From sequence record OQ828465.1: 64,000 bases of DNA; one strand, given 5' to 3'. Of the stretch, positions 1,946 to 19,743 are shown piece by piece. The notes under the pieces were generated by a model. That model ran no database searches. It worked only from the letters and a program-made list of their open reading frames with translations, and was not told where the DNA came from. Each line of letters begins with the position of its first letter. Position 1 is the stretch's first letter. A program made the position numbers and the translations under genes.

Positions 1946-3139
1946 ATGGTGATAAACAAAATGGCTGAACTAGGTAAACGTGAAATTGATCTAACCCTAT
2001 TAGGGCATACTGGTTTAGATCCTTGGTATGGCACTACCTCATCTGCACGGGGTGCTATGTTTGTAACACATATTGGCCAGGCACCAGAAGTAAATGGAAA
2101 TGAATCGCGTTATTTCCTAACGGGTGCTGAATTAGAGTATGCCAAGTATACACATGATGTTCGTTTTCCTGAGGATTGTCGTGTACTACATGTTCTTAGA
2201 AAATATCCAACGGGTATTGGTAAAGACAGTATTAGATCTAACCCGGTAACAACTATTATCTACGAAAACTATTTTGACAAATATAAAACCATTGGTGTCT
2301 TACATGTTCCCGAGTACATGAGTCATCACCAAGACTTTGGTTATGAACTTGTAAAGAATCGAGAAGTGTGGGAAACCATTGCCCCAAATGAAATGTTCTC
2401 TAAAGACACAGTGATTGCACAGTCTGGTGCAGTTAAGAAAGACGGTACTTTAGGGATGGGTGTTAATGCTAATGTTGTATTCCTATCTGCCGCTGGTACC
2501 ATTGAAGATGGATTCGTAGCTAATAAGAATTTCCTTAAAAGGATGATGCCAACTAGTTATAGCACGGCTGTAGCTAATGCTGGTAGGAAAGCTTTCTTCT
2601 TAAACATGTATGGCGATGATAAGGTCTATAAACCATTCCCAGACATTGGCGATGTTATCCGACCAGATGGTGTAATCTTCGCCATCCGTGACCATGATGA
2701 TGATCTAGCTCCTGCCGAGATGACTCCTAGGGCACTTCGTACACTAGATAGAACTTTCGATAGAGCTGTTATTGGCACACCTGGTGCGAAGGTTATTGAT
2801 ATTGATATTTGGCGTGATGAGCGTGTAAATCCATCCCCTACTCCAACAGGAATGGATGCACAACTAGTTAAATATCATACTCATCTTAGCAGTTATTATC
2901 GAGAACTATTAAAGATCTATCGTGGTCTATTAGCACGTCGTAAAGATGATCTACATATCACTGAGGAATTTGAACGTCTTATTGTAACTGCACAGATGTT
3001 CCTACCTCAACCTGATAATGTCCGTAAACTATCTCGATTCTATCGACTAGACCCACTAGATGAATGGCGAGTCGAAGTAACTTACAAAGCCCAAAAGATG
3101 CCTGCTGGTGCTTTCAAGATGACTGATTTTCATGGTGGT
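1946..3139 (+). CDS. rpoB: Non-virion RNA polymerase beta subunit C-terminal part, exon 1 (gp71-like)
   Basis: Ends ...FKMTDFHGG, matching the first half of the beta motif GDKxxxRHGNKGVI; continues in exon 2. Confidence 0.9.
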
Positions 3140-8148: not shown

Positions 8149-8214
8149 ATGAAGAAAAAATTGATTATGATTACAATTGTAGTTATAGCTTATAAACTAT
8201 GGGAGTGGAAATAA
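8149..8214 (+). CDS. 21-aa single-TM micropeptide (not in track)
   Basis: MKKKLIMITIVVIAYKLWEWK; ATAGG-type SD; TAATG-coupled to the next gene. Confidence 0.5.
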   Translation: MKKKLIMITIVVIAYKLWEWK

Positions 8215-15840: not shown

Positions 15841-17757
15841 ATGTCTAATGAACAACAGGTTACAAATAAGAAAAAGATTAAGGGCATTGAAGCCAAACAT
15901 ATTACTTATTGTACTGATCAATTTGGTAAGTTTACAGATGCGCATTTCGTTAAAGAACGAATTCATTTTGAAGATGGTACAACTGCAAATAATTTAAGGA
16001 TGTGGGAAAACTACCAGCGTCCTTTTTGGATTACCTCAAAAGGAATGCGTAACCATAAAGAAAAGAAAGATTACGAATATGAGCGTAACTTAGTTAAATA
16101 CATGTCAACTCAAATTGACATGAAACGTAAGATTAGTAAAATCCTAGGTGACTATTCGGCTAGATCTCTTCGTCAACTAGCGCGTAGTCCTTACCTATAT
16201 GGCAGTGATGTTAGTTCAACCTGTTATCTGAAGCATGATTATCAAGAACGTTATCCTGGTCTAATCTCTCTAAACACTGTTGCTGGCGGTGACATCGAAA
16301 CCAACGTTTATGAAGCTGAGAACGATGGTCAGATTATCTGTATGTCAGTTACACATAAGAACAAAGCTTTCTTAGCCTATTTAAAACGATGGGTTAGTGA
16401 TATTGAAGATCCAGTGAAAGAGACATTAGAACAAGCACAAAAAGAAGAGGTGCTATCGCATCTAATTAAAGAACGTGGTCTAGATATTGAAGTAATGGTT
16501 GTTGAAACACCAGTGGATATTATTATTGAATGTTTTAAACGACTACATATCTGGAAACCAGATTTCTTCGCATTCTGGAATATTAGCTTCGACATTGGCA
16601 GAATCTTAAAAACATTAGAACATTATGGCGTTAATCCAGCTGATGTTTTTTCTGATCCATCGGTACCTAAGAATTATAGGTATTTCCATTTTAAGATTGA
16701 CGAACCTATGACCACCACTGCATCTGGGGTCACTAAATCTAAAGGACCGGAGGATCAATGGCATTGGATTACAGCACCCTCTAGTTTTCAATGTATCGAT
16801 TCTATGTCAACTTATCGAGTAACTCGATTAGCTAAAGGACGTGATCCTAACTATCGGTTAGAGTCTATTCTTAGAAAAGAACTAAACATCGATAAATCCA
16901 CGACCATTAAAAATGATAAGGACTTAGAAGATTTTATTGAAGGTTTTAATAAACAACTAGTTGACCGACCAGGCGGCGTTATTACTAAATATATTAAAAA
17001 TGTAGGTAGTAATGAATGGGTACCGGTGGATGATTTTATATTAAATGATAACTTTACCTATGGTGATTCTATTAGATATGTAATGGAATTTGGTAAGTTA
17101 ACCTTTAAAGAAACTGCACATCTTGGTGGTATCGATTGGCACCGTGAGATGCAGACTAAGCATAAAATCAAATATGGTCTTTATAACATCATCGACTCCA
17201 TTCGACTAGAACAACTTGATGAACAAGTAAATGACCTTGGTCGCTCTATAAGTCTATTCTCTAAGGCATCTGACTATAAGAACTTTAGTTCTAACCCAAA
17301 ACGACTATGTGACGATATGCACTTCTGGTATTTGAATAGACCAGAGCCATGTGTCATTGGTTCAAGTTCAGATCAGATGGTGCATGAACTTGATCAATAT
17401 GTTATTGGCCATAATGATTGGATTGTTACACTACCATCATACATGGCAGGTCCAAATGGATTGCAGTGTGTTAAAGATTTACCGAATTATAAAACCTTAA
17501 TCTTCTGTCATATCGCCGACCTTGACATCGTGTCGACATATCCTAACGTTAGTCAGATTCTAAATATTGCACGTGAAACATGTGTGATGGAATTCTCAAT
17601 GATGGAAGGAATTAGTGAACACCATCGCCGTGAAGTTGGCGTAAACTTAACAGGTGGTAGGGTTAATGCTATTGAAATCACACAGAAGATCATGGGTGCT
17701 CCTAAAATGGACACCCTGCTAGAGAAGTTTATTAATACCTATAAGAACCCAAAGTAA
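15841..17757 (+). CDS. Split family-B DNA polymerase, 3'-5' exonuclease/motif-A subunit (gp82-like)
   Basis: Exonuclease motifs GDIET, WNISFD, YNIID and PolB motif A DIVSTYP; phiKZ-like phages are known to have a split PolB. Confidence 0.8.
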   Translation: MSNEQQVTNKKKIKGIEAKHITYCTDQFGKFTDAHFVKERIHFEDGTTANNLRMWENYQRPFWITSKGMRNHKEKKDYEYERNLVKYMSTQIDMKRKISKILGDYSARSLRQLARSPYLYGSDVSSTCYLKHDYQERYPGLISLNTVAGGDIETNVYEAENDGQIICMSVTHKNKAFLAYLKRWVSDIEDPVKETLEQAQKEEVLSHLIKERGLDIEVMVVETPVDIIIECFKRLHIWKPDFFAFWNISFDIGRILKTLEHYGVNPADVFSDPSVPKNYRYFHFKIDEPMTTTASGVTKSKGPEDQWHWITAPSSFQCIDSMSTYRVTRLAKGRDPNYRLESILRKELNIDKSTTIKNDKDLEDFIEGFNKQLVDRPGGVITKYIKNVGSNEWVPVDDFILNDNFTYGDSIRYVMEFGKLTFKETAHLGGIDWHREMQTKHKIKYGLYNIIDSIRLEQLDEQVNDLGRSISLFSKASDYKNFSSNPKRLCDDMHFWYLNRPEPCVIGSSSDQMVHELDQYVIGHNDWIVTLPSYMAGPNGLQCVKDLPNYKTLIFCHIADLDIVSTYPNVSQILNIARETCVMEFSMMEGISEHHRREVGVNLTGGRVNAIEITQKIMGAPKMDTLLEKFINTYKNPK

Positions 17758-18125
17758 TATATCAGTGGAAGCGCCGAGGAGGATATGAATGTTCATCTGT
17801 TGGTGACAAAAGATTCTCGGCTCTTTACGCAAGGCTTCCTGATGGCAGAACAATTGAGGAAGCTTGGCAGTTAGATTGTAAAGGATATCGCATATACTCC
17901 AACCATTGGAAAGCTGGTAAAGGAAAACCACCACTAGACGGGTATAATCCCAAATATGATGATTATAAAAATCTGTGGAAAGTATGGGCGGTATCTAATA
18001 AACATCTAATGGATGAATTGCGTCAGAATGCAAAAGAACATGATAACTATCTTTCTGATGTTTTTGCTTCTACTGATATTTCACAGGCACGTGCTCTAGC
18101 AGAACTACTTAATGAAGGATATTAA
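17754..18125 (+). CDS. Hidden ~122-aa ORF without a canonical start; NADAR-like motifs
   Basis: Open frame VIYQWKRRGGYECSSVGDKRFSALYARLPDGRTIEEAWQLDCKG...ARALAELLNEGY*; fills the gap before the terminator. Confidence 0.65.
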   Translation, partial: VIYQWKRRGGYECSSVGDKRFSALYARLPDGRTIEEAWQLDCKGYRIYSNHWKAGKGKPPLDGYNPKYDDYKNLWKVWAVSNKHLMDELRQNAKEHDNYLSDVFASTDISQARALAELLNEGY

Positions 18126-18197: not shown

Positions 18198-18222
18198 AAA
18201 CCCTCCCATTACGGGAGGGTTT
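18198..18222. terminator. Bidirectional terminator
   Basis: AAACCCTCCC/GGGAGGGTTT between convergent genes. Confidence 0.85.
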
Positions 18223-18228
18223 ATTTCG

Positions 18229-19743
18229 TTAACTAATTTGGTATTTTAAATTCTGATTACCGTTTAGAACATAAATCTTACCGTCATTATTAAACGTATT
18301 GGCAAAACCTGCATCCACTAAACCAGTTTCTAAATTACCTAAATTTATCCATCGTGCTAATCGTGGTTCATAATACTTAATTGGTGCGTTATTTTGATTT
18401 TCACCAGCGATTACATAAAGTTCACCAGATGGGCGTATATTAATAGCTGCACCAAGAGGTATACCTGTAGTTATTGGTTTGGACCAATTATTGTTGGTTT
18501 GATTGTACGATATGATTCCAGTGTTAACACCAGCACCAACCGTACCACCAATAACGCATACGCTATTATTATAAATACTCACTGAATAATCTTGGGTATA
18601 TTCCCCAGTATCATTAAATGCTGCACCACTGGTATATGTATCTGTAGTTGGATTGTACATTAATGTAAATCCACGATTATTTGTCGCAGTTGTATCAGCT
18701 GCACCTAATATGTAGATTAACCCATTAAGACTAGTTCCACGTGCATACCGGCAAGCTATCGTGCCTGGTGATTTTATTTCCCATGTATTAGTTGCAGGAT
18801 CATAACACTGCATATCTTTAGTAAGTACACCATCTGTGGCACTTTCACCACCATAGAAATATACTTTACCATTAAATGCAACAGCCGAGCATTGTTTAAC
18901 TGCTATAGGCGTACCAGTTGGTTGTAATGTTGTTAACTTACCCGTGACTAAATTCAGTGTACGTAGAGCAGTATTAGCATTATTCTTACCACCGTAATAA
19001 TAGACTAAGTTACCTATTTGGGCACCTGCTGCCATTTCGTTATCAGTTTCAAAATCAGTAAGTTTAATAACATTATCTTTAACGAATGGATATGTACCAC
19101 TAGCATAAACCACTGGACGCCAACCTTGGGTTGCAGCACCCGTTTCACTACTTGACGAGCTAGTTATATCAATCGCATAGTAGCCACGATAGAGCTGGTC
19201 ATTAACTGGATCACTACCTGGGTCTCTTCCCCAGTTAGTAGTACCATCAGTGCTAATACCACCAGCGACCGCTTGGTTAATACCTAAGTCATTATCTGTA
19301 AATTTATAAGGCCAGTTAGCACCATTTAAATTAGATACGTGAACATTATAAAGTAACCTTTGCCATTCTGATGTGGCACCAGCCATTGTTAATAAACCAA
19401 ATTTATAAATGTTCCCCATAAATCTAACTTCATAGTCACCATTACGGAGTCCGGCATTATTAAGCCGTGATTTTTGTATTGATTTACGAGCTGGTTTCTT
19501 TGGTATGTAACAAGTAACATTTTTATTAGAGAACTTTAACCATGGTTGTCCATCATTGATTACTGTTCCAAATGTCATATTAACTAATTTAGCTGCATCA
19601 TCATAACCAAATAATTCTGAAGATGTTGTTTCACCATACAAACCTAATTCCCTTGTCCCAGCTATCAGTGTTTTAGGACCTGGATAAGGATCGGAATATA
19701 TAGGCGTATTTGTTAGTCCAGAAGACAACAATAACTCAAACAT
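18229..19743 (-). CDS. Virion protein with C-terminal Kelch beta-propeller (gp83-like)
   Basis: Six Kelch-like blades (VYYYGG, VYFYGG, IYILGA, VCVIGG, LYVIAG, IYVLNG). Confidence 0.75.
   Translation of the reverse strand: MFELLLSSGLTNTPIYSDPYPGPKTLIAGTRELGLYGETTSSELFGYDDAAKLVNMTFGTVINDGQPWLKFSNKNVTCYIPKKPARKSIQKSRLNNAGLRNGDYEVRFMGNIYKFGLLTMAGATSEWQRLLYNVHVSNLNGANWPYKFTDNDLGINQAVAGGISTDGTTNWGRDPGSDPVNDQLYRGYYAIDITSSSSSETGAATQGWRPVVYASGTYPFVKDNVIKLTDFETDNEMAAGAQIGNLVYYYGGKNNANTALRTLNLVTGKLTTLQPTGTPIAVKQCSAVAFNGKVYFYGGESATDGVLTKDMQCYDPATNTWEIKSPGTIACRYARGTSLNGLIYILGAADTTATNNRGFTLMYNPTTDTYTSGAAFNDTGEYTQDYSVSIYNNSVCVIGGTVGAGVNTGIISYNQTNNNWSKPITTGIPLGAAINIRPSGELYVIAGENQNNAPIKYYEPRLARWINLGNLETGLVDAGFANTFNNDGKIYVLNGNQNLKYQIS

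Follow-up and report, generated by a model that had tools for sequence, protein, structure and literature searches.

The window analysed here, a stretch of 64,000 nucleotides of DNA from sequence record OQ828465.1, originates from a phiKZ-type giant phage and contains the gene for the polymerase subunit DNAP-N (phiKZ gp82 homologue), followed by an open reading frame (ORF) that lacks a canonical start codon and encodes a conserved domain, here called X. The reading favoured for this junction, with a probability of roughly 70%, is that a programmed -1 frameshift on the heptamer C_CCA_AAG yields a minor DNAP-N–X fusion of 761 residues beside the 638-residue DNAP-N, and that the fusion acts at the replisome. 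Comparison of the junctions in related phages makes the existence of a fusion produced by recoding likely. Most ribosomes would stop at TAA and release the 638-residue DNAP-N, and in a minority the tRNAs on CCA-AAG would slip back by one base to CCC-AAA and continue into X; slow decoding of the adjacent stop codon perhaps aids the slippage. DNAP-N is one half of a split B-family polymerase, DNAP-C (gp50) is the other half, and the RNase H–clamp protein Rhc (gp155) is the third replicase subunit (bioRxiv 10.64898/2026.09.30.755723). Inside the phage nucleus, DNAP-N assembles with DNAP-C and Rhc into the replicase, so that the fusion would bring X into the nucleus and to the replication fork.

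The elements of the junction are as follows, with positions in the window.

15841..17757, plus strand: DNAP-N gene (phiKZ gp82 homologue), 638 amino acids; match to phrog_3011 'DNA polymerase', E = 2.7e-241
17748..17754, plus strand: heptamer C_CCA_AAG, slippery relative to the polymerase frame (X_XXY_YYZ phase); proposed -1 site
17755..17757, plus strand: zero-frame stop TAA directly 3' of the heptamer, ending the 638-residue product
17745..18125, plus strand: open -1 frame coding for domain X, stop included (phrog_9995)
17765..17830, plus strand: predicted RNA hairpin starting 10 nt past the heptamer (-22.5 kcal/mol, z = -2.3); weak candidate stimulator, not conserved
18009..18125, plus strand: mini-ORF PHIKZ082.1 of public records, 38 amino acids, the C-terminal piece of X from the first internal ATG

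The polymerase frame ends with AAC CCA AAG TAA. In the -1 frame, a stop at 17742-17744 is followed by open sequence that starts at 17745 and ends with the TAA at 18123-18125, with 125 codons counted from the heptamer; the 122 conserved codons of X occupy 17757-18122. The first of these, overlapping the polymerase stop in the sequence TAATA, is ATA (17757-17759), and 88 codons without a canonical start precede the first ATG, GTG or TTG of the frame, an ATG at 18009. A shifted product would therefore count 638 + 123 = 761 residues. An earlier, preliminary description of this DNA had already pointed to the open frame without ATG until its last 39 codons, to the heptamer directly before TAA and to a fusion of about 761 residues, and the coordinates, phase and length were all confirmed. 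A survey of all open frames of at least 100 codons on both strands of the 64 kb identified the junction site as the sole in-phase C_CCA_AAG, G_GGA_AAG or A_AAA_AAG heptamer. The public records inspected annotate only the last 38 codons of X (PHIKZ082.1), spurious mini-ORFs or nothing; phrog_33573, with 38 positions, matches residues 86-123 of X. A strong motif resembling a Shine-Dalgarno (SD) sequence, GAGGAGG, is followed by two ATG codons (17776-17791), both out of the X frame, and one record annotates an ORF of 30 amino acids there. This motif is probably not a start signal, because GGAGG encodes the conserved Gly-Gly of X.

X matches phrog_9995 from end to end (residues 3-123 against profile positions 2-123 of 124, E = 1.7e-55), and has more than 500 homologues and 844 clusters at 50% identity. 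An alignment of 53 sequences contains 26 invariant columns, including E11, D17, R19, E34, K42 and D101, and the AlphaFold model reaches a pLDDT of 96.7. Searches with tblastn showed X to follow the polymerase gene in PhiPA3, 201phi2-1, Viktualia, the PS119XW group, Phabio, Noxifer, Psa21 and D6, and to be a stand-alone gene at the left genome end (1.2-7.0 kb) in Achromobacter and Delftia phages as well as elsewhere. Among lineages without a start codon, the ratio of non-synonymous to synonymous substitution rates (dN/dS) of X was 0.07-0.21, with dS saturated. This substitution pattern indicates that the X frame is a real gene under purifying selection.

In order to compare the junctions, annotated phages, 80 loci from IMG/VR and 80 metagenome loci were fetched, and the polymerase stop, the X frame, heptamers and starts were located in each. 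A gp82-type polymerase lies directly upstream of X in 48 loci, corresponding to 35 non-redundant junctions, which fall into the following types.

In-phase C_CCA_AAG, 0-3 nt ahead of the stop, with X in frame -1: 11 of 35, window included
G_GGA_AAG at the same place: 1 of 35 (L019)
In-phase A_AAA_AAG, 24-96 nt ahead of the stop, with X in frame -1: 8 of 35, with an X start codon in 0 of 8
X in the +1 frame with the invariant nonamer GAAAAGAAG: 10 of 35, Tepukevirus-like
X in the same frame directly behind TAG: 2 of 35 (L080, L148)
Polymerase and X as a single ORF of 836 codons: 1 of 35 (L096)
X with its own start overlapping the stop, no heptamer: 2 of 35 (L100, L167)

A V_VVA_AAG heptamer in slippery phase is thus present in 20 of the 35 junctions, and the X start codon is missing in most of these 20. 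In 11 of the 12 loci with C_CCA_AAG or G_GGA_AAG the stop abuts the heptamer (0 nt), and the distance is 3 nt in the remaining one. Pairwise identity was 0.91 within the heptamer, against 0.31, a random level, for the 30 nt upstream. The residue before Pro-Lys differs between lineages (N, P, S, L, A or V), and the third base of its codon fits the X_XX pattern in every case. In L019, Pro-Lys is replaced by Gly-Lys and CCC by GGG, with the slippery pattern retained as G_GGA_AAG. As judged from these comparisons, the junction site is conserved among relatives beyond the demands of the protein sequence. The preliminary description had proposed comparing the junction across related genomes; relatives either keep the heptamer or exchange it for G_GGA_AAG or A_AAA_AAG, and the would-be start codon varies. 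The outcome it considered damaging, TAATG in relatives together with a heptamer that is not conserved, was not what the comparison returned, and PhiPA3, which does have TAATG, retains the heptamer too.

The codon homologous to residue 1 of X in the group with the heptamer at the stop is ATA, ATG, GTG, GTA, ACA, ACT or GTT. A canonical start within two codons of residue 1 was detected in 11 of 34 polymerase-linked loci, and a canonical start in the open frame up to residue 1 in 78 of 79 stand-alone loci (Fisher p about 1e-14 between the two groups). A canonical start overlapping the polymerase stop is missing in the window (TAATA) and present in PhiPA3 (TAATG) and L100 (ATGA). The linkage of polymerase and X is kept in relatives by differing recoding signals or by plain in-frame fusion.

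Other junction types were also inspected. The +1 junctions belong to Tepukevirus-like phages, e.g. D6 and Psa21, and their metagenome relatives (L008, L009, L021, L026, L030, L035, L105, L117 and L127). The nonamer is invariant in them, and the codon of the first X residue is GTG, TTG, CTG, ACG, TCG or CGG. In L030 any shift must fall on the nonamer, because the X frame begins a mere two codons upstream; a +1 shift, or a -2 slip by which tRNA-Lys moves from AAG to AAA, would be compatible. In L080/L081 (around 2995-3001) and L148 (around 2046-2064), metagenomic lineages unrelated to each other, X follows in frame right behind TAG and has no start codon, which suggests stop-codon readthrough or amber suppression. 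The 6-kb locus of L080 gave no clear sign either way of a genome-wide reassignment of TAG.

Fusions of X were searched in a library of 1.8 billion proteins. Together with L096 of the junction comparison, uninterrupted polymerase–X ORFs were recovered from three separate chimallivirus-like lineages. P0343 (L175, 3001-5097) consists of a phrog_3011 polymerase followed by X in one protein of 698 residues, and its gene adjoins a PhiKZ-type major capsid gene (PhiKZ_MCP); P0263 (L176, 3001-3711) is a piece of 236 residues with the C-terminal part of the polymerase and X; L096 (359-2869), with 836 residues, comes from a single metagenome contig and is possibly an assembly artefact. In L087 (2983-4761), P0274 and P0301, X forms the N-terminus of full-length Rhc homologues that match phrog_3265, the gp155 family, and L087 aligns over its whole length with phiKZ gp155 (BLASTP, E = 1e-28). 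In L043, X is fused to a phrog_107 exonuclease. X is thus repeatedly attached to replisome proteins, as it is fused to the polymerase and Rhc and elsewhere to an exonuclease. Fusions to DUF4326 and SLOG domains were also detected, both of which are habitual partners of NADAR and Macro domains in phages (PMC9503650). In addition, X was observed inside very large proteins (about 1,400 to more than 6,000 residues), often in viral contigs of 48-100 kb (P0257, P0303, P0282, P0307 and P0335; loci L045, L051-L053, L060, L064, L068, L075 and L079); a Pfam scan of five large X-bearing proteins (1,360-2,291 residues) gave no match.

The preliminary description had left the choice between -1 slippage and an ATA start, and the comparative data strongly favour the former. 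In the latter case, X would be a separate protein of 122 residues made by re-initiation at the AUA that overlaps the polymerase TAA, as a weakened form of TAATG coupling and with no frameshift. Such couplings are indeed present elsewhere in the window, at 8212, 28977 and 40924 as previously described; the PhiPA3 junction is TAATG, and GTG stands at or next to the first X codon in 201phi2-1, Viktualia, L097 and HHBS36_1. Moreover, X follows the polymerase with a start of its own in L100 (ATGA overlap) and L167 (GTG), both of which are without a heptamer, and outside the chimalliviruses X is usually a stand-alone protein with ATG. However, AUA is a very poor bacterial initiator, and relatives that retain the heptamer carry GTA, ACA, ACT or GTT at the homologous codon. 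In each of the eight A_AAA_AAG lineages, X begins 24-96 nt before the polymerase stop and is without any start codon, and re-initiation leaves unexplained both the in-frame fusions and the nucleotide conservation of the heptamer across differing amino acids. Because relatives use slippery heptamers mostly without an X start, other recoding, or in-frame and Rhc fusions, an ATA start is improbable as the main route. A change of frame at the RNA level, by transcriptional slippage of the phage RNA polymerase and not on the ribosome, is far less probable still. The six-A run of the A_AAA_AAG lineages is near the range where such slippage can occur, but CCCAAAG in the window and the G_GGA_AAG variant have no homopolymer longer than three, and the conserved feature is the phase-specific X_XXA_AAG pattern, which is relevant only for tRNA re-pairing. 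There is, finally, hardly any chance that X in phiKZ-type phages is an untranslated relic with a decayed start codon, its open frame persisting by chance or after recent loss. A canonical start is missing for 88 codons and annotators skipped the frame in all records inspected; against this, the frame is intact, every family-invariant residue is retained, X is 57-88% identical in distant genera that likewise have no start, and the dN/dS values are those given above. In tblastn searches, X residues 1-122, including the Ile encoded by ATA, were 98-100% identical in the 31 phiKZ-type records listed, which also speaks against the sequencing error that the preliminary description had allowed for. 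The 1-kb stretch around the junction is 100% identical in Pseudomonas phages PA7 and SL2 and in numerous further phiKZ-like genomes; in total, identity reaches at least 90% in 47 deposited genomes of the phiKZ-like type, and 40 of these 47 reach at least 99%. With this conservation, a sequencing error or a strain-specific lesion at the junction was ruled out.

Several points weigh against the proposed -1 frameshift as the source of X. No conserved downstream RNA structure was detected across nine relatives (consensus -2.1 kcal/mol), and an upstream SD-like element is not conserved, occurring sporadically in some lineages only. As no conserved stimulator was found, the shift efficiency may be low. 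The motifs C_CC.A_AA.G, G_GG.A_AA.G and A_AA.A_AA.G are the most efficient -1 motifs in E. coli (Sharma et al. 2014, PMC4066793); on their own they shift at about 0.3%, a favourable 3' context raises the rate to at most 3.7%, and a pseudoknot to at most 54% (PMC4066793). The fusion may hence be rare, given that bare heptamers of the same class shift only at about 0.3-4% in E. coli (PMC4066793). Since five heptamer lineages have ATG or GTG at the first codon of X, free X may also be made in these. The literature searched contains no mention of X or of a frameshift at the phiKZ polymerase, and no protein-level evidence; no proteomic or ribosome-profiling data for the junction locus were found there, and the Grad-seq supplements have no entry for it. 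The gp82 study used annotated coding sequences only and does not mention a frameshift; it assigns residues 589-638 of DNAP-N to part of a 'palm insertion' domain (bioRxiv 10.64898/2026.09.30.755723).

The nature of X was addressed with profile and structure comparisons, the preliminary description having noted a resemblance to NADAR domains. Direct evidence did not bear this out. Pfam searches with X and 52 relatives gave no NADAR at E <= 1, and X itself matches no Pfam family. A PDB sequence search with X returned only noise. As NADAR comparator, YbiA of Stenotrophomonas phage AXL1 (accession from PMC9206674) was expanded to an alignment, against which hhalign gave X a probability below 2%; direct profile homology of X to YbiA-type NADARs is therefore not claimed. 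The proposed comparison of the AlphaFold model by Foldseek leaned towards NADARs, at sub-threshold level only. The single PDB match with a TM score above 0.4 is NADAR 8bau (TMq 0.42, E = 5), and in BFVD four family members rank first, while the sub-threshold matches listed after them include 10 NADAR-named proteins and 7 named DUF4326, the former with E values of 0.4-8, probabilities of at most 0.51 and TMq of 0.27-0.55. X is also about 40 residues shorter than the NADAR core, and no DarT gene was found near X. Apart from the leaning of the fold searches, which is suggestive, these observations count against an assignment of X to NADAR.

Indirect evidence was more favourable. Rhodobacter phage RcJoli and Rhizobium phage RHph_Y5A encode remote X homologues with a sub-threshold match to PF22397, 'DarT1-associated NADAR antitoxin'. 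The sister subfamily that they represent comprises 1,530 proteins, with a PF22397 annotation on 4 of the 120 listed, and aligns with X at an hhalign probability of 99.8% (E = 1e-29). When scanned, 49 of 62 members matched PF22397 at E <= 0.01 (best 3.4e-8) and 0 matched another Pfam family; these matches span profile positions of about 48-101 out of 212, and most lie under the gathering score of 27 bits, a point against the assignment. The top PDB match of the sister model is the Geobacter lovleyi NADAR 8bat (E = 0.058, probability 0.90, TMq 0.46), and the matches ranking below it, with TM scores of about 0.14, were discarded as noise. The catalytic Glu/Lys pair of T4 AdfN is E36/K43, with a spacing of +7 (bioRxiv 10.1101/2024.07.11.602962), and DarT1-associated NADARs have an Asp in the last strand (PMC11125620). 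In X, E34, K42 and D101 are invariant in 53 sequences, and D101 follows the last strand of the model; in the sister subfamily E33 and K40 are invariant, with the +7 spacing of AdfN, and D95 is found in at least 90% of the sequences. The equivalence of these residues to the catalytic residues of NADARs rests on sub-threshold alignments. Since the bridge through the sister subfamily, the Glu/Lys/Asp residues and the domain partners agree, X was taken as a NADAR-superfamily domain; sequence and model together suggest that it is probably a compact and divergent one. Sister members are unannotated in three phage genomes, RHph_Y5A (L179, 410-781), RcJoli (L180, 371-742) and MD18 (L181, 371-721), and the gene of RHph_Y5A (TTG start) is immediately upstream of a DNA polymerase gene, with an overlap of 14 nt.

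As a compact NADAR-superfamily hydrolase, X might remove ADP-ribose-type base adducts from template DNA, a proposal drawn from the sequence that is put forward tentatively and at somewhat less than even odds. The guanine adduct of DarT1 would be the obvious candidate target. T4 AdfN (gp30.3) is a phage NADAR that removes DarT1 ADP-ribose from DNA (bioRxiv 10.1101/2024.07.11.602962). The nuclear shell does not keep DarT2 from modifying chimallivirus DNA, a modification that phiKZ reverses by importing the macrodomain protein AdfM (gp104) (PMC13309987); X would complement the nuclear AdfM, which counters DarT2. The AdfM study reports no chimallivirus NADAR (PMC13309987), and no ADP-ribosyl-base glycohydrolase activity reported for the X family was found in the literature searched. 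A NADAR-type module on the polymerase would enter the nucleus alongside it, meet adducts at the fork, and act inside a compartment that a free enzyme might not enter. The fuller proposal, a DNA de-ADP-ribosylase built into the replicase of Pseudomonas-type nucleus-forming phages, in which a NADAR on the polymerase or Rhc clears DarT1-type guanine adducts at the fork and recoding sets the dose, is more speculative again than the activity itself. In this proposal, strong selection for linkage and for a sub-stoichiometric dose would be suggested by recoding having been re-solved in at least four ways, namely -1 on three heptamers, +1 or -2 on GAAAAGAAG, in frame behind TAG, and hard-wired fusion.

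It is also conceivable, though less likely, that the fusion is made and X is not an ADP-ribose hydrolase, serving instead as a docking, nucleus-import or nucleic-acid-binding module, or acting on a substrate linked to primer removal. The direct profile and fold comparisons to NADAR are sub-threshold and X is shorter than NADAR; the X domain of L055 (residues 1067-1128) weakly matches an 'inactive DUF488-N3' model, and DUF4326 proteins are also among the fold matches. The partners Rhc and phrog_107 exonuclease are RNA-primer or R-loop enzymes, and a primase has not been identified in chimalliviruses. On the other hand, 26 invariant columns with charged residues suggest catalysis over mere docking, and the sister subfamily matches only NADAR-DarT1 in Pfam and the Geobacter NADAR in PDB. 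The pairs E34–K42 of X and E33–K40 of the sister subfamily match the spacing of the catalytic Glu/Lys of T4 AdfN, and the invariant Asp after the last strand agrees with what is reported of DarT1-associated NADARs.

The proposed -1 frameshift into X resembles recoding events already described. In lambda G/GT, the tail assembly chaperone, and its relatives in tailed phages, a -1 shift on X_XXA_AAG near the 3' end of the gene likewise yields a minor, C-terminally extended product at a fixed ratio, and the lambda heptamer, G_GGA_AAG, is the variant found in L019. Here, however, the gene with the slip site is for a replicative polymerase subunit and not for morphogenesis, the extension is enzyme-like and a free protein in other phages, and the heptamer abuts the stop. 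In E. coli dnaX (tau/gamma), recoding of a replicase gene on A_AAA_AAG, the heptamer also used by eight lineages related to the window, gives two forms of one replisome subunit. The dnaX shift shortens the protein and relies on two stimulators, an SD-like element upstream and a hairpin downstream, whereas shifting here would extend the protein and a conserved stimulator was not found.

Among enzymes acting on ADP-ribosylated DNA, T4 AdfN is a small phage NADAR-superfamily protein, as X probably is too; it is without the N-terminal extension of DarG1 and has a catalytic Glu/Lys pair (bioRxiv 10.1101/2024.07.11.602962), to which the invariant E34/K42 of X and E33/K40 of the sister family may correspond. 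AdfN is a free early protein and a recognisable NADAR with His as third catalytic residue (PMC11125620), whereas X is about 40 residues shorter, escapes detection by the Pfam NADAR models, carries Asp in that position and would be tethered to the polymerase. DarG1 (PF22397; 8bat) is the closest detectable family, and its acidic residue in the last strand is Asp (PMC11125620), comparable to D101 of X. In contrast to DarG1, no DarT toxin gene adjoins X, X is without the N-terminal extension, and the window protein stays below significance; X would be an orphan phage-borne relative and not the antitoxin of a DarTG1 module. AdfM, a DNA de-ADP-ribosylase of a chimallivirus, has to do its work within the phage nucleus (PMC13309987), and X is proposed as its counterpart for another adduct. 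AdfM is a free macrodomain imported by PicA, with its activity shown, whereas X has a different fold and would be delivered by the polymerase. Polyproteins of positive-strand RNA viruses also place a Macro or NADAR domain next to the RNA polymerase, coupled to the replicase (PMC9503650); these are eukaryotic RNA viruses with polyprotein coupling, as opposed to ribosomal recoding in a DNA phage.

Frameshifting and phage NADARs are known already; a recoding-made fusion of a replicase with a NADAR-like domain, with interchangeable recoding, is absent from the literature searched. PhiKZ is the model nucleus-forming jumbo phage, and a recoding signal that adds a fourth, enzyme-like module to DNAP-N would alter the parts list of its replicase. 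X would account for an 'empty' gap of 370 nt, wrongly annotated in all those records of the 47 matching genomes that were inspected, and a replicative DNA polymerase would join the short list of phage genes that use programmed frameshifting. The relatives would offer a natural series in which one fusion is kept through differing recoding mechanisms. If X were an active NADAR, phiKZ-type phages would possess a second anti-DarT activity beside AdfM, piggy-backing on the polymerase, with a bearing on how proteins enter the phage nucleus and how DNA-ADP-ribosylating defences are countered.

The neighbours of X in the window are the polymerase subunit gene and virion genes; the homologue of gp82 is labelled DNA polymerase in the PA7 and phiKZ RefSeq records. 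Downstream of the hidden frame, where the preliminary description placed a terminator, a terminator-like hairpin was indeed found.

18198..18222, no strand assigned: terminator-like hairpin of the rho-independent type, separating the polymerase/X unit from the convergent virion gene
18229-19743, minus strand: convergent virion gene, beyond the terminator-like hairpin

In Bacillus phage SP-15 (L178, 1-853), the gene of a distant X homologue, SP15_003, comes right after a DUF1273 gene (Pfam PF06908, according to the annotation of the record) and overlaps it. A link between X and the 'little finger' insertion of the polymerase (350-415), for which Basu et al. suggest lineage-specific partner binding, was considered and rejected, since L028 and P0343 carry X and yet their tblastn/BLAST alignments skip polymerase residues of about 345-414. 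In PhiPA3 (L003), the DNAP-N gene is split by a group I intron at 1911-2216 (Rfam RF00028, 71.7 bits), located right behind the codon that corresponds to catalytic Asp562. At the same position, L080 carries about 370 nt of inserted sequence (about 2304-2674), with no Rfam match. Because the intron interrupts the DNAP-N gene of PhiPA3, its GenBank gp085 is annotated as ending early.

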